A stretch of DNA of 64,000 nucleotides from NCBI GenBank assembly GCA_964199315.1, contig OZ116701.1, forward strand, positions 3,844,001 to 3,908,000, in the 5' to 3' direction. Under the pieces are notes generated by a model. That model was not told the DNA's origin. It saw only the letters and a list, made by a program, of their open reading frames with translations, and did no database searches. Of this stretch, positions 101 through 27,900 are shown piece by piece (within the stretch, counting starts at the first letter, position 1; every line of letters starts with the position of its first letter). Both the position numbers and the translations under genes were made by a program. Origin of the DNA: Orbicella franksi (Eukaryota).

Positions 101-3100
101 GGGGGGGTTCTACCTGAAAAATGTGTATTTTTTCAAATAATTGTAAAATAAAGACTTTTATTCAAAACCATAACAAACTATATATCACTGGAAAGCTCAT
201 GAACCATAGATTTCAAAAACTTATGTTATGGAGTGCCATCGGCAAATGTAACCTGACACCGGGCATTCCAAGAGACCTCATGCTGTGGGTGACACATATG
301 TACTTGAGTAAAGATTTCTACATGCAGATTCGACAACAAAACAACATTTTACTGTCATTCTAAAGCATACAGAATGCTTCTTGGGATGAACGAAGGGTTT
401 TGACAAATTTCAAAATGTGACGTAATTGCACATGTCTCAAGTTACATGTCCAGAAAGTGGTCACTATTCGGTTGACCATTTCTTTACTAAAAGTCCTATG
501 AAAAATTCCTTCGCTCATCCCAATAAACTCATTAACAACTACCATCCCTGAAAATTTTAGGTCCATAGCTGTAATCCTTCTTGAGATATCTTTACTCAAG
601 TGTTAAAAAACTGCGTACTGAGAAAAAGGCCATTAAATTAAGAAAATCAAATTAAACAACAGCTGTATTCAAATAATAGAGTCTCTGAGTAGTAAACAGT
701 CCACATTTAAGTGAAGGAAGCCTTGTGAGCAAATTTAGAAAGCCCCAGCTTCATATGTGACACCTTCTTTCTCACGAAGGGCTTCTTCTCGACGGATACG
801 GACAAGCTGTAACCCTTGGCGACGCTTTTTCTCCTTAGCTGTTGCCTGGCTATCCGCTTTTCGGAGCCGTTTCCTGTCCCTGAGCCTTAATATGTGGTCA
901 GTAAATGCACCACCAGGAATGGAAAGTCTCTCCATCACTCTTTTCCTGCTCTCAGCCCCTCCATGGAAATGACAGACTGCAGATGCTGCAGCACAGCGGA
1001 CAACTTTTACTCCGTGGTGTTTGTGCTTTGGGCACCGCACCCAAACCATAGCGTTGATACTTTCATTTGGGTTCTGGGTTGTCCCAAGTACACATCTTTC
1101 CAGAAGTTTACTGTCGCTCAGAGTCACAAATGTTGGCTTCAGCAGCTCCAGGAAGACTTCAGGTAAACAGTCGTCTCCTTTGTACGTATTAGTTCCAGTT
1201 GCTAAGTCCTGCTGCCATTTACACCACGAACTTTCACCACGAGGGCAGAAGCGGTGTTGCTTAGCAGCATCCTCTGATTTTATGCAATGATGAAGAATGG
1301 CAATTACATTCTTTTTCATTGCATAAACTGCAACATTGACCTCCTTTTCCACAGGATTTGCCTTAGCCAAGGTGTTTTGCCGGATCGCCAGACCATAATA
1401 CTTTTGGAGCTGCTTAATTTTTCCTTCCGTAAGCCTACCACTCCCCCCTACCGGCTTTCCATCCTCCAGTTTACCTTTTGTGCGGGCCTTAAGATTCATC
1501 AAATGTTTACCCATCCTCTTCTGCACATGGCCCACACAATCCAGCTTAATAACTTTGCAGCCATCATACACATTTTCTACTGTGTTAAAAGCCTTGCTGT
1601 CACCATCTGACACCATCCATTTGTATCTTATGTTATGAAGCTCAATTGATCTGTTCCAAAGAACAGAAGCTCCTTCAGCTTCCATAGCTGGTGAACTTCC
1701 ATCAAAATTAATGTCACATTCACCAGCTGCCAAATGCTCCCTTCTCCAGTCTTCAAATTTTTCATCATCCCCTTCACATTGTGACTTCTTCACAGAGCAC
1801 TTATGGCAAGACTTCGACATCACATGGTAGTCTAGTACCTCTCCAGTGTCAACTGATATAACAAAAACAACACCAGTTAATGAAGTGAAGCCTCTCTTGG
1901 CCCATGTGCCATCAAAGCTAACAGCAGCATCAATTATTGCAGTGCTGTCGGACTCGCCGTTTTCCTCCATCACTTGCTGCCGAAGCCGTTGGCCTGCTCT
2001 CACAAGTTCTTCTTTTGCCTCATCTTCCAAGGCCTCCAAAATTACATCCATTTGCTTGTAGTACGCAGCTCTTGAAAGGCAAGGCATGTTCATTATTGCA
2101 CAGAAGGAGGAAAGCCCTTCATATCCAGTTCCCGATTCTATTGAATGATATACAGCTCTCCTGTTGACATCAAAAGATTTTCCTTTTTTGGTGATTTGGG
2201 GTGATGTCTGCCAAGGAGTGCTTTCATCACAAGAACTGCATTGAATGGATAAGTCTGACATTAATCCTGCACGGCTGGAGGCATTTTCTTCCATAGTAAG
2301 ATTTCCTGAATTAATAAAATAACAAGAAAAATATACTAGCAACTACAGCTACGGAACCACACACATAGGCTTATAACATAAACAATACTGAATGCATGAA
2401 TTAGTATTAATTTATTCAATATCAGTGTCAACACATGGAGAGTCTAAACAAGACTCTGGCACAGTAAAATAATTACTTTATATTTACAGCTGATTAAAGT
2501 CCTTCATGATAAGCTGGGAGGTACTTGCATAACAATACATTAACACCACAAAAATGAAAATAATGTACAAATAAAACACGAGTTGTACATGCTTGTTTCA
2601 CCTTTTCTGCATTTGTGTACATTCGAGAACACAGACGACAAACTCTTCAAATCAACAAGCCTGTATCCATTTCCTTCCTCTACTGCTTCTGTTTCCTCGG
2701 CAGAACTTATATAAGATTCATCCTCAGAGCTCTGGAGTTTCATTTTCTTCCTTGAAGAACTAAGTGGCTGGTCACTCTCTTCACCAGAATCTAATAAATC
2801 AGATTGATCGTGCGAAGTACCAGGTCCCGATTCAGAGATTTCACTCTCTTTCGAAGGAGTTTCCTCGCGTGATTGCGGACTTTTAATAGCTCCACCAAAT
2901 CCTTTTCCTTTCCTCGTTTTCCGAAAAATGCTTCTTTTTCTCTTTCCAGTCATTTCAAAGTAAAACTTTCCCAGCACTGTATTTCGAAATAAACAACGTC
3001 CACTCGAAGCAATTTCCAATTCGTCCCCAGTGTCTCTCTTGCATTTTCTCGCATATGGCTTCATGTATGGGGTCACAAATATGACTAAGTTAGTTTCTAC

Positions 3101-6900: not shown

Positions 6901-9900
6901 TTCTTGACTACTCCCAAGGGTGAGTGGTTTTGGATACGAGGCAGGGTTAGCTGCATGTGTAGCTTAAATAGAGAAGGCTTCTGGGATGATGCTACTTGAA
7001 TTTTTTTCTTCCATGCAGTGGTACTAAAATAATCTGGGTTTTTTTTTTTCACAGATGTGTAGTGGTCTTGTTCAACCCCAGGAAAAACAAGCAAAGTTTT
7101 GTTCTCAATACATCCAAGTAAGAAACACTTATTAGCATCTACACTGTATTGTGAGTGTGATCAAAGTACAGTCATGTAATTTACTCTGCCCATGACACAA
7201 TTCTGAGGATAATACCTGAGTGTATTTATACATGTATACATGTATGCTACACTGATTAAGTAGCTTGAAATTATCTGATAGCATTTTGCTATTGAGCCCC
7301 CCAAGTCTATTTGAAACGCAAATTCAGTGACAACAAACTCAACGGACCGAGACTGAGTTTTTTTATGATAGATTACATTCATAGTTAGTTCATCATACTT
7401 GACACTGACATAATTTTTGAACTTAATTAGTACTGTCGCGAGGACGGAGAAATGTTGTTCGCTACTGATTTTGCAAGATCTTGTTTTAGAATATCTTATA
7501 ATTATAGAACTTTATATATATGTTGTTGCTATAAAAGGTTTTTTCTCAATTTGATGTGCTGGGTAGTTGTTACAACAAAGAAATAGCCACTGACTAATCA
7601 TTTGATTTTTACAGAAAAACGATCACTTCAGTAGCCTTTTCTGGTGATGGCAAATATTTGGCAACAGGCGAAGTAAGTTTTTGCAACTTAAATTATTTAA
7701 TGCATATTAACCAACAGTCAATAATAATAATAGATTGTGTTTTAAATTAATCTAATTGTAATCACTTTTTCTCTTTGCCTCACAATGTATGGGTACATTG
7801 TACATTGTGAAATCGTTTTAAATGTGGATTTCATTAGTTGAGACATCACTCTTATCAGTTTAATAAGGAAAATTCAAGCTTCCGTATTTTTCTTCATCTT
7901 TTCAACAGAGTGGTCACATGCCATGTGTGCGAGTCTGGGATATGGAAGATCAGTCCCATCCACAGATATCAGAGATGGCAAAGGGACATAAATTTGGTAT
8001 TGCATGCGTGGTATGTTACATGTTATGAGAAGTAATGGTACTGAATTATTAATTTGAAAAAGATTCCGCATTTTTTGTGGTTTGGGACATTCTGTTGTAC
8101 ATGTATTCTTGGGGAAGGAACTTTACACTTATAGTGTGCCTCTCTCCACCCAAGAACTATTTATCAACTTGTACCAATTAATTCAATGTTGAAAAACCAA
8201 CTGACAAAATGTGGGTAACCTGAGTTGGAGTATTTATACCATCCAGAGAGAATAGCACAGCTCTAGCAAAAATCCGCCAGCTGGCAATGTTGCTGCATAC
8301 AGTGAATTATTGGCTCCCAACTTCTTGCTGAAGTTCACTTATCCTGACAAATAACAAGTCCATCTCTGGTATTTAGGCCTTAAGGCGGGTGATTATCTCT
8401 GGTTTCCATAGCATGAAGCAACTCTAGAGTATTTTCTATTCCCCTCCTGGATGGGATACTTTCATTTATGCTATCCCATCGCAGGGTTACCCCCAGCATT
8501 ATATTTGGGGGTACCCATTTATACACCAGGGTGGAGAGAGACAACACAATGTCCCCGGCCAGGGCTTGAACCTGAACTACTCGATCCTAGGCAAGTGCAC
8601 CAACCGTGAGGCCACCGCACCTCCACATCTCTGGTCTTTACTGCCCATTATTGCTGTTACTTTCTCGTCTGCTATGAAGCATTTTTACAGGGCGGGTAGT
8701 AATACTCTTAATATACACTAAGGGCCAGGCTGCTGAACAATAATTAGGATGGGCTCCAGTGAACAAACTTTGCTTTGAGCCATCTTCTTGAGAGGTTTTA
8801 TTTTATACACATGGAGTACGTTTTTGGGCTGTCCTCTTTATTTGATTTTGTGTGGTGTGATTTATGAGCTTTTTCTTTTCATTCCTTCTCCAAGGCATTT
8901 TCTCCTAATTTAAAATATGTGGCATCTGTTGGATTCCAGCATGATATGATTGTCAATATTTGGAACTGGAAGGTAACATGTATTTTAATCTTCTGGTAAT
9001 AATTGTGTATACATGTACATTATACAGATTAGATGGTCAATCAAAATTTTATTTCATTTTCCAGGCTGAAGTTTAGTTTTAGTGCAGTGTAGCTTGTCAG
9101 GATTTTTCACTTTTCAATTTTTCCAATGCTGTTTCTACCATTTTACCATTACATTTAGTATTTATTTCAATGTTGTTTTAAATTTTTTACTTTTGTACAA
9201 TGCTTTTAATTAATGCTTTTTTTAAAAATTTTGGAACGATGTACATGGCTAACATAGTCCATTTAGGCACCAGGATCACAAAGATTGTGGATGTGAAACT
9301 ATCAAAGCTTAAATTTTTTTCCTTCTTTCTTTGCAGCTACAAAAACTTGCCATTTTACTGCAAAGATACATGTTTTTCATTAATATTTATTTCTTTGTTT
9401 TCATTGTAGACTGGTACAAAGGTTGCGAGCAATAAAGTTTCATCAAAGGTAGGTCAAAACTGATATTATTGTGCAAACGTTGTTATATGTTACTCACTGA
9501 AGTGAAAGAAGAAATGTTGCATCAACTGACACTCAATTAAGATTGGTAAGTTCACACTCTGTCTCATGACTGTCATGTGGCTGTTCTAAAACCCAATTAT
9601 TAAACAAACCATTTCCAGGGTGCTTTTCTTGAGTACTAGTGGAAAACCTTTAATTTATATATTTGGTAGTCTGAGTTCTACTTGCATTTTCATTTTCATG
9701 CAAATCAAACATGTTTTCATATGAATGAAGGTGCAATCAGATTTTGTTTTCAGAAAGAGGGAAAGGGAAACAGGTAAGTGGTCTAATCAGTGCAAACTTT
9801 CCTCTTAATCAGTAGTTTACTCTTTCATTTTCAGGTGTCTGCACTATCATTTTCTGAAAATGGTAGCTTCTTTGTAACTGTTGGTGTCCGTCATGTCAAA

Positions 9901-12900: not shown

Positions 12901-15900
12901 GTTTGACACAAATCTTCCATTTTGACTGTGAAGCTCTTCTCTCAGAGTCTACATTGTTTGTGATTGTTTCTTGCTTATGCGCGAACCTCTACATTAATAA
13001 AAGAAAAGATAAAAAGAGTACCAACTTTTTGAAATGCATTTTGTAAAAAACTACAGGTATTTTTTTCAATTAACTTTAAGCATTAGGGTTGGATGACACT
13101 TAGAAACGTTTTGTTTTAAACATTCTCCTTTGTACCAACAGATTTGTTGGTAATGCAGACCTGGGGAATTATTTCCTTCTTCAGATCAGGGGTTTTATTT
13201 TAATTAAGTATTTTAGTAATATCATGGTCAAGAATAGCGCACACCATTTTTTTGTTGAAATCGTCCCAACTCAAAAGAAACTTCAGTCTGTAAAAGTCAC
13301 CTTCTTGCTTTTATCTTGTGCCACTGACAATGTTTGATTTGTTAAAATCTGACGTTTTGTTGTAGGTGTACCCTAATGTGTCAGATAATCGCCAGGCAGC
13401 CCTTCCTCCAGGCTCATTCTTAACTTGTTCAGCTGATGATACTGTTAGAGTGTGGAACATTGAAGAAGGTGAGAACTAGTACATTTAGCAGGATCAGTCT
13501 AAGGGACGTTTCCACAAATGTAAAGACATTAGATATCAGAAGTTTGGTGATTGTACCTTGAATCCCTGTCGGTTCAAATCCAAGTGTTTTCTTTTGCATT
13601 CTAATGTGTTGTGTCTTTTCCAGGAACAAGTATCTTATTTGAGAGGAATGTTTACAGCAAGGTAGGTTGAGTCAATGTACAACACCACCACTCAAAAAAG
13701 TCTTCATCTTTTTTTCTTGCTCCTTGTTTAATGACCAAATGTTGTTTCTTTCACTACACGCTTTGCTTCTGGTGAAAATCATAGAACTGGTATTAATAGA
13801 ACGTTCTTCTCGCAAGACGCCAGTGTTGGTGTATTTCTTTCCAAAACCTACTCACTTAGGCCTCGCTGTGCAATGTTTTCATGAAGTTGCTGAGTTAACA
13901 CGTAGTTTACCTGTTATCAGTCATTATGATCAGGCAGATCTCAAGAAATTGTTCTTGCTTGTGGTAAACTTACAGGAGATGATGAGAGTATTGTATATGG
14001 AAGATGCAGTAGCCAACTTGAAAGATACTGACATCAGTCCAGGTAAGTTGATAACTCTTTTTCAAACAACAAACTTCCAAGTAAACTCCTTTAAACCGTT
14101 ACCTTCCTGTTCAGTTCCATAACAACTATTTCCTTTTAGAGAGCATGAGGGTGAACCGTGCGGCCTAAGACAGAGCAAAAAAAAAAAAAAATGTAGGACA
14201 AAAAATGTACTTTGTCCCAAGCTTTCACATGCCTCATTGCACACTCGAAAGGGAAGAGTTTGCTATGCATGTTTCTAAAAAAATATCGATGCCCTTTTTC
14301 TTCACTGCTTCCTCCCTCTCGGAAATCTTCATTTAGTGATTTGTATTTTTTTTTTTCTCACAAGCCATAAAGAACATGCGTGATTCCACCGGTGACACAC
14401 GGAATGCTGGGGTGAGATGTATTCGTATTAGTCCGGATGGACAGGCACTGGCTACTGGAGACAGATCAGGGAATGTCAGGTTTGTATTTCAAAAGAAAAC
14501 ACATTTCACAATTTGTTTTCCGCTGGGTGGACAGACCTAACATAGACTGTTACTCACCGACCTGCCTCTTACAGTGTAATCATCCGAACCCCGGGTCCGA
14601 ACCAGCAGATATTTGTTTTCATCCCCCATGGTTACGCATTCTTGCCCTGCTGCGAAATTCTATGCTAATTTCTTCGCCGTACAGAGATCCGTATAGTCTC
14701 TAATTGGTTGTTAATTGCGCGCGAAAATTCAAAACCTGGAAACTACTAATCAGAAGCATGGCACGGATCTCTATAAATCTACGTCATCAGAATGAAATTT
14801 GTCGGGTCCAGTCCCAGACGTCTATTTTACCGAGGACAAATTTCAAGATATTCCTACTCACCTGGGAGGCTTTCTTTTACCACAAAGTCAGTTTCTCAGT
14901 ATTGCTTATAAATGTTCTTTTCAGGGTGTATGACTTGATGTTCTTTGATGAGACTGCAAAAATTGAGGCACACGAGTCAGAAGTGTTATGTGTAGAGTTT
15001 TCACCCACAGACTCGGGTATGGAATGGAAGTTTGTAAATGTTTTCCAGTGTTACAGTAACTCAAGGTTTGATTATTTGTCAGATTCTGTTTTGAGCAATT
15101 TTCAATCGAGTGACGTGACATTTGTCACTCTGGCCAATCACAAAGGATACTGGTAATCTAATGAACCAATCAAAACTCAAAGCAAATACGTGTAGCTGGC
15201 GTGAAGCGCGGGAAAACATGTGCGAGCGAGTCATTATTGGTTTTGGTTTTTGCTTGTGATTGGTTGAGAAAATTGTGCGAGATTTTTACAACAAATCTCT
15301 AGGCGTAGTAAACAAAACCAAAGCAAATAAATAGTGCTTTTGATACTCAAATGAAAACCGCTCTATGTTTACATTTTGTTAATCCTTTCTCCTTGTAGGT
15401 CATAAATTACTTGCATCAGCCGGGCGAGATCGACTTATTCACGTCTTTGATATGATGAATAACTTCGTTCTTGTTCAGACATTGGATGATCATTCAGCGT
15501 CAATAACCTCCATCAGGTTCAACAGTAAGTAAATCTATGTTTTGTAACGTTTTGCTAACCACACTGGAGTACAGTGTATGTTCATTATGTATGTTTCGTG
15601 TTAACGTTAGAAGTATTTTAGGCGTGCTTGCAGGTATGATGAATCCGTAGGGGCTAATAGGCCATTTAAGATTTTGTAAGTTATAAAAGAGCCACTCGAA
15701 GGCATCTCTTTCAACTTTACTTTTTATTTTTTCTGTTTATTCACTGCTGTATTTTCTTTATGATAATGTAACGCTCGCTGTAATCTGCCTCAATAAACCA
15801 GATGCCCGCTCCTGATGCTGTGTTTATTAATTAAGATTAGTTACAAAATAATTTATTATCGTTTCAGGGTGATTAGAGTGTAACATTCACTTTACACAAA

Positions 15901-18900: not shown

Positions 18901-21900
18901 TGCTATCTAATTTTGCACTTAGAATGCAAAGCTTCTATTGGTTGCATGATAGAGTTGAGACATTGGTCCATTGCTGATCATATACTTCTGCTTTCTTGTC
19001 AGAATATGGTGGAGAAACTTCAGGGACTTGGACAAGAACCAGACAACAAAATCCAGTTTGGAACTCCTATCAGGTATTATTTTTAGTTGGCCTGACCAGT
19101 TTCTCAAACCTCCAGAGATAAGTCAAAAAAGACAAAGTAATTCCACAGTGATGAATTACTGTAATTCTGCAAACATCCGTGTGTTGGACACCATTACGAG
19201 ATTCCTTGCGTCGAAATGACACTTGATGTTCTTAGTCTATTCATTATAGCTTCCTTGCGGGGATACATATTTTATTGTAGCGTTCAAGTCTTGTCGAGAG
19301 GATCAATCTCCTGCTGTTGCCTGGCTTGTCGATCTCCTGAGAGGAGCTATTACTAACAGTTTTTTTTTTTCTCATATTGTAACGATTGTTTTTATTTGTT
19401 TAACATCAGGCGCGAGACATACCAAATGACTCATCCATCCATAATTGAATCACCAGAGGAGAACGACTTTGTCCCAGCAGAACCTTCGGCATTTACCAGG
19501 CCAACTAGAGGTATATATAGCTCGTATCTAGCTCAGTCGTGAGTTACAGTAACCGAGGTCAAAAGAAGATTGCGTGCGGTCCCTCATTTCATTGTTGTTT
19601 TACTTTGCACTTTTCTTTTTTTTTCTCTGATATCCTAGAGCCCAGTCCCCCAGTCAAAGATTACCGATTTAGCGTGGGTCAGTTGCCTGCCTGGGCGAAA
19701 AAGCAGGTGGGTTATTTTAATAAACACAAAATGTCTTTACACTTCTCCATCCTTTTCTTACAGAATTATTTGGAAATATATAACTTGTTAATTGTGCTTG
19801 AATTTCAAAGGTAATCACACACCTTTTGTAAACAAGATTGTAACATTTTGGTAAAAGCTTCGTTTATTCCGTTTTAGCTGGTCGCCGAAGGAAATGAAAA
19901 AACTAGTTTATCGCCAGAGCAGGATAACACTGGTCCAATAAGTCAACCTGGAGGGCGCTGGGCACAGGTGAGCTACTTACCCACCCCTCCCTAGTGCTGG
20001 TTCTTAGTTCTTCAGATGTGGAATTGTCTTAGATAGGGGTTCAAGTGTTATAATATACGCGGCTTCCCACATTTACATATGTGCACTGTTTGCTCGAAGG
20101 TGATTGAAGTTTGCGTCTTTTAACTGTTTTCGGTTGAAGTTGCCATTAGAACAAAAGTAATTGCAACTTGGCGTACTCGCGTTTGTCCTCCCTTGGCGCA
20201 CGTGGAATTTATTTATCTTGAGTTCTGACTTGTTGCTTTTTCAGTAGCTACTACAACACCGCTGTGATAAATTATTCTAATGCACCTTTTTGACGACATC
20301 ATGCAGTTACAACATTGTTTCGTTTTTTTTTTTTATAAGAAACCACTTTCATAGATCAATTTACCATGCCGAATTTAGAAAATATGCGAAGCGTCATACG
20401 AATCCCTTGCAAACTCATAAAAACATGGACCCCCGAACTTGCCAATTTTTTTTTTTTTTTTACCAACAAATGTATTTCGAAATTTCGGAACAAAAACAGA
20501 TTGCAAACTCATTACCAAGTGCTCCCAACCGGAAAAAAAACCCCTCCATTTTTTCCCAGAGAGTGTTTGTTTCTATTGAAACCTTTTTTTCCTTTTTTGC
20601 AGCGAGTCCAAAATGGCGGTATTCATGTGGCTGGTGATAATGGCACGATACAACCAATTCCATTCTCATTTGAACCAGCAGGTAAAAACAAAATGCAACA
20701 ATCAAATTGTTGTTGACTTAATAAGGAACAGAGCCATCTCCAAGTAGTGATTAAACACGCCTTTTCATAACTGTTGCTTAGCAATGCAGAAAATATCAGA
20801 TGAAGAGGAAAGGTCAGTTCATAAAAATAATCAGAACTGAACTTCTACTTTTTACACAAATCAACCGAAAAACTGTAGTTTGCTTTGCAGCTTTTGGTCC
20901 CAACTGGCGACAGATAGAACTGTTGTGTGAAGAAAACATGTTCTCTTGTTTTTGAATCGTGTACTCTTTTTGCAGATCGGAAGCGCTATACAATAGAACC
21001 CATCTCACTGCAGGAACAAGTCAGAGCTCTGGCAAACAGCGTATGTAATTGATTCGTTTTAATTTAATGTTAAGTCCTGCTCATGCGACCGTTAGCTTTT
21101 TTCATCACATGTTTGGATTCAAAACCTTTTGCAGTTTGTCCAACTCTTTTCTTACTGATATTTTTTGTTTGTTCTTTGTTATTTTGCAGCCTCTCGAGAG
21201 ACGTTGCTCACTTACACGAGGGGTAAGAAAGAGATAGTGATCTACTTGGCTTGAATTTCTTTTGTCCAGTAAACTCTAGAACCTTGTGAAAACACCTTGT
21301 GGAGACGCGACTGAATTTTGAGTCCCGCGCTTTAAACGAACGTTATTCTTGATCCCAGCGAACAAAGTTTCTCGGAAAGAAATAGGCTTGAAATAAAACT
21401 GCCATTTGGTAAAGCGCATTCGCGTGAAACTCTAGCTATTGAACAGCTACAGTCTGCCGATTGAGGCAGCTTTTCAGATTACAGGAATGAAGCAATGTTG
21501 TTATCGGGGAGCAGGGATGAGGCAGTATTGAGAGCGCTCGCCTCCCAGCAATGTGGCCCGGGTTGGATTCCGGCCCGGTGTCATATGTGGGTTGAGTTTT
21601 TTGTTTGTTCACGCCTCGCTCCGAAGGTTTTTCTCCGGTTTTCCTCCATCCGCAAAAACCAACATCTCTAAATTCCAAATGAACCACGGCAGAGGACCTG
21701 CATTAAAACCAGCTAAGGCTGCTGTGACTTCCTCTCTAAATGTTGTAATTTATTTATGTATATGTGGATTGAGCTCTCATTAATTTCGCAGGAAGATGAT
21801 GATCTGTTTCCCGCGGATGGTCGAGCAGCTTTGGATAAACTGAGCGAGGAGGAAGATTATAATGAGGTTAGTATCTTTACAGTTAAAAAAAAAACGTGGT

Positions 21901-24900
21901 AGCCGTAGAAAGCTCAAGTCACATGACCAAACAATTAACACACCAAAAAGTTACCTGACCAATTTCAGGAGGAGTAAGAAAGTTTGATTGCTTTTGCTTG
22001 TAAGGAAAATTTGAAATCTGCCCGGGCATTTTGTGTCAACTCTAGGCTAAGTAAGGTTAACATCGTGTTGAGGGCGTACCTTTCCTGCCTTACAGGGAAC
22101 CGCTCCACCTGGTGTCACCGTGTCACGTGGCAGTGACGTCATGGCGCAGGTCTCACGGAAAAGTAGTGTTGTGATGTCAGAAGCCGGAGAGCTCAAATTC
22201 GAGGAAGCTGAGGAGCTGGACGAGGGAGAAATGAAAGAAGTGATTATCTACCTTCCTCCAAGCCAGGATGACTTCGACAGTGAAGTTGCCAGGTCAGAAA
22301 AATATCCTTTTTATGTCCCTAATGAGGTCCTTCATCCATGTGGTGCTGGGGCAAGTTGCGTCCTTAAGGACCTACCCCAAGACGTAGGAGTGGAAATGAG
22401 GCCGGCCTGTTACGACTCCAAGAGCCCTTTGTATGCCTATTCGATGCGAGAGTTAGGTTGCAAGGTCGAAAAACGGTCCTTGTTGAATGAGATCTTACTC
22501 AGAGCTCTTCGGGAAATGGAGCCAAGTGTAGGGTCCTTTTCAGACGGCCATGTTATTAAAAGCTTTTATCCAAGGAAAGGAAAGGTTCCCTCGACTAAGC
22601 TTTTCAGCGTTTTAGCGCCTTCTGGACAAGACAAAAAGTTAAATTCCAAACAATTAAATGAAAGTGTTTGTGCAAAGTCATGCTTAAATGAAGTGACTAA
22701 CTCTAACTTAAACCCAACCGTTACTAAAACATGCTTTAAATTGAATTCTTCTACTGTTGATAATATAAAGTTTGAACGCTGTAAAGTCGAGATTAAAAAC
22801 CTATCGGAAAACAAGAATGGTCCTGGCAACAGAAATTCTAACGTCTCCAAACATTCAGAGAGAAGTCTTTGGTTTAATGGCTTATTTAACAAGAAGGTGA
22901 CTTTTGGTGGTCTTGTCTTTATTAGTCTCAGTTTACTTGGGTATTACAACATTACGGGGATACAGTAATTAGATGAAAATGATAAATTAGCCCTCGCCTT
23001 AAACATAAGATTAAATGTTAAAAGGTTACAGTCATTGCACTGCTGTCAGCCACAAAAACATTTTTTTTTAACTTTCCGTTGGCTTTTTATTGGTTTTCTT
23101 GTAAAATTCCCAGTCAATCAAAATTCCAGCAGTGGCACACGCAATTTCTGAGCACGTGAGTTGCACGTGAGTACTTTGTCTTCACCTTCCCTCCCCCCCC
23201 CCCACCCCCCCCCCTCCCTCCTCCCGTCGCGACACTAAAGTTGGATATTGATTGGCTGGGCAATTAGGAAACCAGCAAAAAAAATGTGGAAAAGTTGTAA
23301 AAAAAACCTAACCAACTCTGCAGGGAACGGTTTGAATATTTAAACAACTTCTTGAAATATTAATTAAGCTCTGTAAAAGAAACTTGAATCGGGTCTACTT
23401 AAACTGAAACAATTGGTGTTTATTATTAGTCTATTCTCTGACGCATGAGTCTAACTTTAAATTCTGCGGATGAAACCCTGTTGGTGTGGTCATTACTTTC
23501 ATGTTATGTGGTTTGTCTTTCTAAATTTTGCAAAAGGAAATTAGGGTTTTTTCAATTGTAAACTTTTTCACTCTTGAAAATAAAAGTGAGATTTTACTTT
23601 GCATGGTTATTGTTTTGCCGACATGTTAATTTCAACTTAACTAGAAATAAACACATAGATAAAAAGCTATTTTCGAACTTGTTATGAATAAGGTTTAAAG
23701 TTAGTTCTATTTTAAAATATAAAAAAAGTATTTATATATATAAAAAAAATTATGTTGTTATCTCGAGAGCTAGTCAGAGTTTTTTTGAGAACTTAAACCA
23801 GTATATTTTAAATTTGAAAGTGTAGCAATTCTATTATTTTATGAAGAAATAAATTTTTAAACATGTACTCGATTTCACTTTTGTTTTTAACTTTCAGCTC
23901 TTCTTAACTGAATCGATTGTTTGGTAACAAATAATGTAAGAATGTAAATACTTCGTTTTTGTCTTATGATGTAAAATTATATGCAAGGGTAAAAAGTACC
24001 AAAAGTTAAATCTAAACTTTATTTAACTCTTAAAACCTTAAAAATAATGTTGGATCTGGAGTAAAATGACTAAATGAATAATAATTTTTTTTAAATGTTT
24101 TAATCATGAACACTGACCGCCCAAATAGTAATTATTAAACTCTTACTTGATTGAATTTTAACAAAGTACTTGTACTTAGGGCGTTTTTCTGGTGACATTC
24201 ATAAAATTAATTCCGAAGTAATCACAGAATGAACATTACGGCGGGAAATTTCAATAATCCATATAACACGTGACTGGCTGCTAACGCGAGTGGCGGCAAG
24301 CGCGGGAAAGTTAACGGGTGCAAAGCGCGGGAAACGTAGTGGAAGCTATTATTGATTTAATGGTATTCTTTTTTGGCTGAAAAGGCCATGAAAGGCAGAA
24401 CCTTTGCTGTTGTAGGCTCGAGTACAGTGCGCGACTTTCGTAACTTCAATTCGAATTCACTTGAAAACGCTCTAAACTATGTTTATCTTAAACGTGTGCA
24501 ACACTTTAAACTTCGTTGCAGTCCCTATAACTTAAAAGTTCTTAATATGACATAAAGTCGCATGATAAGTGAGATTAAAATTAATTTAGAGTTAATATCG
24601 TAATATGAATTGTTTCATTACACAGTTCTAACAACAGACCTTCCAGAGGCCATTTCAAGTATATGGCAATTTTCAAGAAGTCTCAAAAAGCTAAGTAAGT
24701 TCTAACAAAAACAAAAAAAATGCGCCATCGTTCATCATGGCCGCCGCAAAATCATCTTCATAACATTCCATATCTTTTTACCAATAATTTTCTAACATTT
24801 CCGAGTAACAAGCCCTAATCCGTGGTCTTTGCTTTATTACAACAGTCCCCCCACTCTCCCCTCCCATTTTATTGCATTTAACAATTAATGTAACTAACAC

Positions 24901-27900
24901 CGACTGTCTTCCTTTTGCACACTCGCTCGACCCAGTGCTCCGCGGGTCCAAGAGATTGTGCACCATTACGAGGCTCTGCAGGTAACTCATCACCAGTCTT
25001 GCCCCAATATCGCTCAGCAAGTCGACAAGAGCCTGCAAGACGATTTGGATGAACAGGATGATCCTGTTAAGCTGGATAATCCGGTTAAACCGGCTCCGCT
25101 TAACAGGTCTCCGTCGTTAGATTATCTGCCTTCACGGCTACAAATGTTTCTCAGGTAACCAAATAAACTCTTAAATTATTTATGGGTTACTGAAAGTAAC
25201 TTAGCAGTAAAACTTTATAAAGTATTACAAAAGATACAGACAGACAAGCACTTTTGAGTTTCTGTGCACTATGAAGACTGTTGACTGTGAAATGTTTAAA
25301 ATAAAATTTTAGTCACGGATAAACAATTTAAGAAAGTCAAAGAGTCTCTGTAAAGTTTCATTCTAAAAGAAACTCGGTCAGTTTTTTTAACTGTCAACTT
25401 TTTCTTTCGTTTGTTTCAGAAGGTCCACTTACAGATAAATTCCAATAAAATGTACATTCATTTGACTTAAATAACAAATTTAAATGTCGTTAATGGAATT
25501 TTTCTAAGGAATAAATGAAGTTAAGAAATTTATCGTTTAATGTAGCCTCTGTTTAACTAAATTTGTCATATATACTTTTAAATTTTTGTCTTGCGGATTT
25601 GTTTGTTGCCACTTAAAACATATTTGTCTGTTTCCACGTTATGAAAATCAAAACTTGCAATCGTTACACGCTTCATAAGTAGAGTTACTTTTTAAATCGT
25701 GGACGTAAAGAATGCTTTGACTAAAGCAATTGACAATCGTTTCATTGCTCGCACCGTGATTAATTCACTCTAGAGCAAACTAAAAACATGCGTCCAGCTT
25801 TCATTGTTTTGCCAGCCAAAAAAAAAACCAGGTAACTGGTGGCTGGCGCAGCAGAATATGTAAGCTGTTACCGGCGTTATCTTGTTTTTCACCATAACAA
25901 AGTCTTGTCTTTCAACAGCTCGTTTCAGCTGTCTGCCGCCCAGCGGCCTAAAAGATTGTCTTTAACAGTAGAGGACCCCAAGGGCGAAGAAGTGGAGGTA
26001 CATATGAAGCTGTTGTCCGCTGTTGATCTTTTTCGCAAATGGTGGCCAGTTTCAAATTCTTTAGTATGCATTTAAATCAACCTCACTAAACTCGTTGGGG
26101 AGTAAAGATTATTTTTAATTGTCAAGTCAAAAACGGGTTAGAGTAGCTAGTTTTGATACAGTACCTACAAAAGAATTTATAATTGGAAACCATTTATGAA
26201 AAGGGTCTATAGTGGTAGATTTTTTGTGATATTTGCGAAAAATTATTTTGAACTGTGTTTGCTTTCGTAGCAATATTATATTAGACTAGTGATGTGTTGA
26301 GTTGATTGCGCATTTATTGTTGTTGATTTTTTTTTTTTGTATTTTAGGGCAAAGATAAAGCGGGAGAAAAGGAAAGAAAATCACGTAAGATGATAGAACG
26401 TTTTATTACCGTTTCCTTTTTAGAGTTCCACAAAAGGCATTCCCAATGTTTAAGTGATCAAAACCCCCTTCATTTCAAAACTTAAGAACAACGCCGCGCG
26501 AAGACAATGCTTCTTAAACACGTTATCTGCTATTACGAATCAGTAAAATTCACTGAATGGTGACAGCGTGATGTGCAAGTCTTGCAGCGTGTTTAAAGCC
26601 CCCACCCCCACCTTCCCCCGTCTTCACCTCCCGTGCGTCCCTGTTGGGGAGATGCGATAACCTTACGGGCCAAAAAACTTCAAATCTGAGGCTGTGGAAT
26701 CTTAAGTTTGTTGTTTTTGTTCAATGCGTAGCTTCCAGTGAAGATGAGGATGACGAAGTTATCAGCCCATCGGAAGACTTGTCAAAGCCTTTTGGCGAAG
26801 ACGAAAACAAGTCTGAGGGAGGGGAAGATGAGGAGCTGGTTGGTCGCTACTTTGAAAGCCTGGGTACCAGCTCTCCGACGCAGAAAGTGGACGAGCAGCC
26901 AGCCGAGCCGCCGCCCCTGGACACGGAAAAACTGATGCGAACCAGGCTGAGTATCTCAGCCAGGTTTTTGTCTCGATCGCATCAACCTGGACGGTATGCA
27001 AATATGTAGGCTACATCTTCGATGTGTTAAAACATTATTAATGTACTATAACTATTAAACAGAAAATACCTAATCAACATAGAGGAATGTTCTCGCCATA
27101 TGACCAAATTCAAAGTGCTAACAACACTGGAGCTATTTGTTTAGGATGTGTAAAAAATTACGTTCAAATAAATGTAAACGGTTGTTTTAGTGTGCTGAAG
27201 CCGAGGTACGCAACTTGAAGTCACCTTAACTAGACAACTGTAACAAAAAAAGTTAGGCTACGTTTTTCAAGGTAAAATAACCGCTTTGATAGAGAGGCTT
27301 TGGTCAACTCAGAAATGGGCTATTTCAAAATTACATGCTTTGGACCAGCCTTTTTTTTTTTTTAGGGTTGGCTCGATATCAACAAACCTGGATGAAGAAA
27401 AAGGCGACCATCGTGCAGATGATGTAAGTTTTCATCTTTTTTCTTTGCAATGTTCAGTGGTGTTTCAAACATTCCTTTAATAAAACATGCAACAAAGCAC
27501 TTCAACTATTTTTGTGACACTGCATAGACCCTTTTCATAAATGGCTGCCAATTATAAATTCTTTTGTAAGTATTAAAATTAGCCTGACTAACCTCGTTCT
27601 TGAGTTGATAATTCAAAAGAATTTTTACTCCCAAACGAGTTTAGTGAGGCTAATTTAAATACTTACAAAAGAATTTTAAATTGGCAGCCATTTATGAAAA
27701 GGGTCTATATTTGTACTTCATTTTGTTTTTAAGCACAGTGTGTATGGCAAATTATACAGTGGACTCTTGAATTTACAAATTTTTTGAGCCCTCGATTATT
27801 TGAATCTCGTGATTACTTGAAGCATTTTAGTCCCTTGGCAAAAGAAATTAAGGAGGAATTTTTTAACTTTCAGGTCTTTCAAATGCCAGGTTGGTTGAAT

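Follow-up and report, generated by a model that had tools for sequence, protein, structure and literature searches.

From gene structure, comparison across corals and RNA data taken together we propose, with a probability of roughly 0.7, that corals make a conserved alternative form of their MAPKBP1/WDR62 orthologue, with a tail-anchored C-terminal extension, besides the full-length protein. The gene lies in a 64,000-nucleotide (nt) stretch of the Orbicella franksi genome (GenBank assembly GCA_964199315.1, contig OZ116701.1, positions 3,844,001 to 3,908,000 of the forward strand), referred to as the window, and all coordinates below are positions within it. The extension lies directly downstream of an exon that we call exon 35; this label, like that of exon 34 just upstream, follows the numbering of a preliminary description of the window that was made from the letters alone. 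The elements in question are:

22096 to 22292, plus strand: constitutive part of exon 35, 197 nt, with a phase-2 end and its acceptor AG at 22094-95.
22293 to 22294, plus strand: proximal 5' splice site (AG/GTCAG), used by the full-length mRNA (joints 22292^25919 and 22292^24626).
22293 to 22884, plus strand: coding extension, a fast-evolving linker of ~197 codons that is predicted to be disordered and has an open frame in at least seven lineages.
22885 to 22965, plus strand: conserved tail of 27 residues, consisting of a basic flank and a hydrophobic helix (predicted helix 22891-22959); putative tail anchor.
22966 to 22968, plus strand: isoform stop TAA.
23010 to 23015, plus strand: ATTAAA, candidate poly(A) signal, 44 nt 3' of the stop.
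23167 to 23172, plus strand: distal 5' splice site GTGAGT, giving a long alternative exon 22096-23166 (joint 23166^24936 in RNA run X7).

Past the proximal donor, the frame of exon 35 remains open for another 225 codons, stop included, up to the TAA at 22966-68. With the local base composition, a run of 224 stop-free codons has a probability of ~2e-7, in agreement with the preliminary description, which had called this length very unlikely by chance; the stop-to-stop frame of 298 codons ranks fourth by length over the six frames of the window. The same description had placed the extension in AT-rich DNA, which is correct for its second half (34-39% GC) but not for its first 300 nt, whose GC content of 47-49% is exon-like. 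Neither the extension nor the tail has another copy in the 497-Mb assembly, the second tail match having E = 0.34. This rules out a transposable-element or repeat origin of the extension, a possibility that the preliminary description had itself raised. A Pfam search with the 282-aa open reading frame (ORF) gave no significant family, and an ESM Atlas feature search with the extension gave no usable match.

The extension recurs in other corals, where the preliminary description had suggested that it be sought. With the 290-aa frame as query, an exhaustive HMMER search recovered ORFs of 281, 299 and 316 aa that share the exon 35 start and the same tail, and a profile search returned 67 ORFs, ~60 of them with the C-terminus ...LGYYN(F/I)..(I/F)Q; the length filter of the profile search favours intact ORFs, and losses are not countable from it. 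The contigs that bear the orthologous ORFs are genomic and come from metagenomes of coral holobionts and from long-read assemblies; in them the ORFs occupy the same intron position, with alignable flanking exons. Contig L003 carries a WD40_MABP1-WDR62 gene fragment (PF24782) upstream of the extension, and the Logan contigs L014 and L015, which run collinear with the genome, are not spliced cDNA. Twenty representative ORFs form at least seven groups with only 32-60% overall identity, and the extension comprises 225-260 stop-free codons in at least seven lineages. The tail consensus is NK(K/R)..FG.L......LGYYNFVW.Q-stop, in which N-K..F-G and L-G-Y-Y-N are invariant in the 20 representatives and NFVW is nearly so. 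In two ORFs of greater distance, P0012 (contig L013) and P0014, the frame also passes the donor, and the sequence that follows is unrelated and has no tail motif. Three further ORFs (P0008, P0011 and P0013) are copies of the window ORF with systematic changes of the S/P/L-to-F type, as from C-to-T converted DNA, and are probably artefacts from bisulfite-library assemblies.

The same comparison bears on whether the extension belongs to the host gene at all. An independent gene inside the intron, with a promoter and a start codon of its own, could instead encode a ~200-aa tail-anchored protein that has no relation to MAPKBP1/WDR62; ORF callers do place starts at methionines within exon 35, and the contigs are too short to connect the extension with the WD40 exons. 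Such a gene is nevertheless extremely unlikely, given that no methionine of the linker is conserved, that the frame is the exon 35 frame in every lineage and has been held despite many indels, that the RNA contig of the extension in run X1 begins at the exon 35 branch point (22263), and that the upstream exons splice in frame to exon 35.

The manner in which the extension has diverged indicates that its frame is kept. All seven extension indels relative to contig L002 (of lengths 3, 12, 12, 18, 12, 3 and 9) and both of those relative to L015 (21 and 3), a close relative used for divergence tests only, are multiples of three, compared with 12 of 43 in flanking non-coding alignments. Identity to L015 is 90% in the extension, 81-86% in the neighbouring intron and 93-95% in the constitutive exons, exon 35 itself being at 95%; between exon 35 and its counterparts in the distant corals L003 and L008, identity is still ~77%. 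The ratio of nonsynonymous to synonymous divergence (dN/dS) of the tail is 0.18 between the window and L015 and 0.26 between the window and L003, against 0.05-0.22 for exon 35; in the other deep pairs, tail dN is 0.2-0.4 and dS is saturated. Frame and tail have been kept by selection in many coral lineages and, therefore, the product matters as a protein. Judged from these comparisons, the extension is almost certainly a real, selected coding sequence.

As to what the tail does, its predicted structure and composition point to the membrane. AlphaFold2, run with a four-species alignment, predicts disorder, with a predicted local distance difference test score (pLDDT) below 50, along the whole ORF apart from a single helix (residues 266-288 of 290, pLDDT 53-74). 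In all four species tested this helix is the hydrophobicity maximum of the ORF and its only hydrophobic stretch, with a length of 16-21 residues. Kyte-Doolittle means over 19 residues are 1.51 in the window, 1.28 in L002, 1.83 in L003 and 1.84 in L008, for a usual threshold of ~1.6, and the approximate insertion energy (dG) on the Hessa scale is +1.3 to +3.6 kcal/mol and positive in all four species. A conserved K/R basic flank (NKK) precedes the helix, and at most six residues come after the GYY belt. This agrees with the layout of a tail anchor, in which one hydrophobic helix lies no farther than ~30-50 residues from the C-terminus and the luminal end is very short. The basic flank and lone C-terminal hydrophobic segment noticed in the preliminary description are both conserved features. 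On sequence and model, the tail is probably a membrane anchor. Because the segment is short and only moderately hydrophobic, the endoplasmic reticulum (ER) or the mitochondrial outer membrane would be the likeliest target of this putative anchor. Of the tail-anchored isoform first suggested, what stands is a selected coding extension with a conserved helix, present in poly(A)+ RNA assemblies; insertion into a membrane, by contrast, is a prediction and the hydrophobicity in the window species is borderline.

The protein to which this tail would be attached can be named with confidence from its profile matches. The host gene is a member of the MAPKBP1/WDR62 family, because its upstream exons match both PF24780 and PF24782, respectively the first and the second MABP1/WDR62 WD40 domain. 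The first propeller is represented by the exon ORFs at 9790, 10443 and 12613 (profile positions 126-164, 160-241 and 301-328 of PF24780; E = 2e-11 to 2e-24), with further exons from a search of the coral's own genome; these scores are per exon and hence fall under the whole-protein cut-off. The second propeller is represented by the exon ORFs at 14376, 14704 and 17209, which match PF24782 with E = 4e-6 to 2e-9. The domains upstream of the extension are thus soluble WD40 propellers. The own-genome search found no second locus with comparable multi-exon PF24780 matches, and the gene is by this measure single-copy in the coral genome. Splice joints in RNA set the exons 21190-21222, 21792-21866 and 22096-22292, and the spliced translation is a single frame into exon 35 and the extension. 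The residues EVARS at the proximal donor are conserved across all orthologues.

What the extended product would lack follows from the position of exon 35 in the gene, downstream of which lie at least 800 codons of exons. In human MAPKBP1, the JNK-docking D-domain occupies residues 1293-1300 of ~1514, shortly before the dimerising coiled coil, and protein without the coiled coil is mislocalised (PMC12347751). By position, the coral equivalents of the JNK D-domain and of the dimerisation domain are encoded farther 3' than exon 35, and the extension isoform would therefore probably have neither. No Pfam match was obtained for the downstream ORFs at 26644, 29829 and 31741; D-motif-like strings were found by eye in the exon starting at 25919 (RPKRLSL) and in the ORF 26644-27009 (RTRLSI). 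The preliminary description had argued that the isoform keeps all WD40 repeats and loses the dimerisation helix: the exons for both propellers do lie upstream, and the loss of dimerisation is probable by position. Its wider claim, that a JNK scaffold is relocated to a membrane, was overstated, the D-domain being by position downstream of exon 35 and lost too. A membrane-tethered WD40 double propeller fits the evidence better than a relocated JNK scaffold.

The extension is represented in RNA. Fourteen RNA runs from at least seven studies, poly(A)+ RNA assemblies included, contain 69-89% of the sampled words of 22050-23100, whereas runs contain 23-55% of the words of the next intron stretch, 23250-24300; run by run, the shares for the two stretches are 0.89 and 0.32 in X1, 0.70 and 0.31 in X12, and 0.69 and 0.31 in X14. 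When RNA reads and contigs were mapped on 21000-26999, the main joint proved to be the one from the proximal donor, 22292^25919 (depth 288 in X1 and 24.6 in X7), so that the exon 35 donor is usable, as had been supposed. In X1 the depth is 114.7 over exon 35 and 12.1 over the extension, on a contig covering 22263-22960 that starts exactly at the de Bruijn branch with exon 35; in X7 the corresponding depths are 53.8 and 14-26. RNA coverage of 22293-22968 had been proposed as a check, and these contig depths are moderate support for expression of the extension. A contig of X7 spans 22509-23166, crosses the stop and the ATTAAA, and is spliced 23166^24936 with GT..AG ends (depth 14.3; one run). 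The alternative distal 5' splice site is thus seen in processed RNA, in which it makes the long exon 22096-23166.

As the way in which the extended mRNA ends, the preliminary description had proposed intronic polyadenylation after the ATTAAA at 23010. The motif is there, but no transcript end near 23030 was seen, the raw reads being too shallow, and the RNA of X7 passes through both the stop and the signal before it is spliced. A canonical AATAAA or ATTAAA occurs at most 70 nt after the stop in four of the six lineages, compared with 7-19% of random 70-nt windows at these loci (P ~0.006). Given this enrichment of poly(A) signals close behind the stop in different lineages, intronic polyadenylation is plausible, and we give about even odds to a stable extension mRNA that is formed by polyadenylation just after the stop.

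Several observations weigh against the proposal of a conserved tail-anchored isoform, and they concern in turn the linker, the tail, the RNA and the persistence of the extension. The linker evolves at a near-neutral dN/dS of 0.6-1.0 and has no third-position excess or other codon-position bias, as would also be the case if the open frame in the intron were fortuitous. The odds of ~2e-7 apply to the window species alone, however, and the open frame recurs independently in lineages whose synonymous divergence is saturated; we regard chance as a practically negligible explanation, effectively refuted by the triplet indels, the dN/dS of the tail and the open frame across at least seven groups. A linker sequence nearly free to vary, a frame kept open and a constrained tail are what would be expected, on these comparisons, if the extension serves to attach the tail to the upstream protein.

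As regards the tail, the values for the window (Kyte-Doolittle 1.51, approximate dG ~+3 kcal/mol) are borderline for a membrane span, and in the window's own group NFVW has changed to NITG, NIIR or NIAW. Constraint on the tail may be relaxed in the window genus, though its dN/dS against L015 is still 0.18. The extension could accordingly be genuine while its terminal helix is a hydrophobic or aromatic interaction motif (a self-association helix, a partner-binding peptide or a degron) and not an anchor. This would agree with the borderline Kyte-Doolittle values, 1.3-1.8, and positive approximate dG in all four species, with the polar and aromatic nature of the best-conserved residues (G-Y-Y-N and W), which do not form a generic hydrophobic run, and with the C-terminal dimerising helix of the canonical protein (PMC12347751). 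Yet a sole hydrophobic stretch of 16-21 residues at the extreme C-terminus, with conserved K/R before it, is the classic tail-anchor layout, and a conserved glycine or a belt of aromatic residues is common within transmembrane segments. We consider an interaction motif unlikely, though a serious rival, and favour the anchor.

On the RNA side, intron depth in the same gene is zero in parts and up to 8 in others in X1, and the raw poly(A)+ runs X23 and X24 are too shallow to give read-level proof: over 6 kb they yield 12 and 32 reads, of which none falls in the extension. Logan contigs are unable to reveal transcript ends. The sole processed extension transcript seen has its stop 198 nt 5' of an exon junction, and because of this distance it would be a target of nonsense-mediated decay if the exon-junction rule holds in corals. 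In addition, at least two coral lineages (L009/L010 and L011/L012) have lost the extension or carry it in broken form. An allele from a close relative, on a contig of X7, has a 1-nt deletion at 22726, in an A4 run, that ends the protein at residue 215 and removes the tail, and P0071, on a JGI contig, has a 1-nt insertion near the same position, its ORF ending ...KTCFKIEFFYC-stop. The preliminary description had regarded frame disruption in related species as damaging: the frame is open in at least seven lineages, but it is lost in at least two, and frameshifted alleles exist in close relatives.

These splicing data, losses and frameshifted alleles would suit a model in which extension to the distal donor only down-regulates the gene through mRNA decay, with no role for a protein. 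The transcript of X7 is indeed spliced 3' of its stop, and a second variant in this intron, with its acceptor at 24626, likewise runs into a stop, after 24 codons. A decay switch needs just a stop, however, and leaves unexplained the 225-260 open codons in at least seven lineages, the exclusively triplet indels and the constrained tail; moreover, the distal donor at 23166 is not conserved in L002. We therefore hold unproductive splicing to be a very unlikely account of the extension as a whole.

The losses themselves differ in form. The ORF of the L009/L010 lineage is cut short after 106 aa; its intron is ~1.15 kb long, the tail is missing, and frameshifted variants occur (P0003 and P0007). 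L011 and L012 have in common an insertion directly after exon 35, with only a decayed tail relic behind many stops, whereas the related contig L018 (ORF P0070) has an intact extension. This pattern suggests that the extension was lost a single time, ancestrally, in the L011/L012 lineage. The common inserted or rearranged segment occupies L011:6226-6900 and L012:196-900 and has the frame-2 peptides FLPGIFGLKIKMAT... and FLPKVFALKSNMAT..., and the decayed tail relics read TLLGYYDF... and LLLLTGYQNTL-stop.

For the conserved tail-anchored isoform, the following scheme can be proposed. When the proximal donor (22292/GT) is left unused, translation would run in frame from the upstream exons through the ~197-residue linker into the 27-residue tail, on a stable mRNA that may be made by polyadenylation just 3' of the stop. 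The hydrophobic helix would then be inserted post-translationally into an organelle membrane as a tail anchor. Tethered to the membrane, the product would keep the two WD40 propellers and some of the disordered region, and would have neither the JNK-docking region nor the dimerisation coiled coil.

Around the extension, the RNA joints define the following exons:

21792 to 21866, plus strand: upstream constitutive exon ('exon 34'), with joint 21864(+2)^22094(+2) and GT..AG ends in X23, X1 and X7.
24936 to 25154, plus strand: cassette exon of 219 nt, in frame, with joints 23166^24936 (X7) and 25154^25919.
25919 to 25999, plus strand: next constitutive exon, of which only the start is defined, by the acceptor of the main splice 22292^25919.

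The cassette is conserved in L002, L008, L009 and L011, and would be 3' untranslated region in the extension isoform. The main splice in X1 and X7 skips it, and there is no 22292^24936 joint among those listed. Just 5' of the cassette, the intron segment 24555-24935 is 84% identical to L002, compared with 65-69% for the remaining intron, and is also alignable to L003 and L011; with the alternative acceptor at 24626 (joint 22292^24626, X7), it is a candidate for a conserved 'poison' exon extension. Elsewhere in the mapped region, positions 21400-21700, within the intron 21223-21791, have an RNA-contig depth of 166-448 on contigs that diverge into unlike sequence, and match L008 on the opposite strand; this is probably a dispersed, transcribed repeat. 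The poly-C/CCCT tract at 23189-23225 reaches a depth of 1,000-3,000 with many false joints in RNA contigs, which is a low-complexity artefact. The ORF list of the window also includes a 535-aa ORF at 735-2342 on the minus strand.

Work on MAPKBP1 (JNKBP1) and WDR62 has treated them as soluble scaffold proteins of the centrosome, the spindle pole and the JNK pathway. Nephronophthisis and microcephaly trace back to these proteins, whose localisation is believed to require the dimerisation domain at the C-terminus. In the coral gene, too, a pair of seven-bladed WD40 propellers forms the N-terminal part of the product, with a long disordered region after it, and the full-length mRNA goes on from the joint 22292^25919 to C-terminal exons. 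Whereas the described proteins are soluble, the coral isoform stops before the C-terminal regions and has a hydrophobic helix at its end. In line with the preliminary description, whose author knew of no such form, a full-text literature search found no described tail-anchored MAPKBP1/WDR62 isoform: among the papers listed, the term 'tail-anchored' appears together with MAPKBP1 in none, and beside WDR62 only in a paper on SMPD4. The class of isoform is known from other genes, and what was previously unremarked is a tail-anchored form of MAPKBP1/WDR62. Tail-anchored products of alternative 3' exons of otherwise soluble proteins include CASP (from the CUX1 gene), LAP2-beta as opposed to LAP2-alpha, and VAMP-1B. 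There, too, alternative splicing or polyadenylation lets one gene yield both a soluble form and a form that spans the membrane once, at its C-terminus. In those cases, however, a separate exon carries the anchor, while the coral isoform would arise by read-through of an exon into the intron, in another host gene, and its anchor is putative. Another comparison is Sab/SH3BP5, a JNK scaffold resident on the mitochondrial outer membrane, and as such likewise a JNK-pathway component on an organelle membrane; it has no sequence relationship to the coral isoform, which probably lacks the JNK-docking D-domain and may not scaffold JNK.

The WD40 propeller region is the part of human MAPKBP1 required for microtubule targeting. 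It is possible, though we would call it doubtful, that stony corals have long kept a dedicated membrane-tethered double propeller that organises non-centrosomal microtubules or local stress signalling at the ER, mitochondria or another endomembrane, and that G-Y-Y-N/W could mediate a specific intramembrane partnership, not passive anchoring. If the proposal is true, a selected isoform that swaps the dimerisation domain for a membrane anchor would mean that the WD40 double propeller has a membrane function of its own, and would offer a natural construct in which to test the propellers apart from JNK docking and dimerisation. To coral genomics it would add an example of a conserved coding exon extension concealed in an apparent intron.

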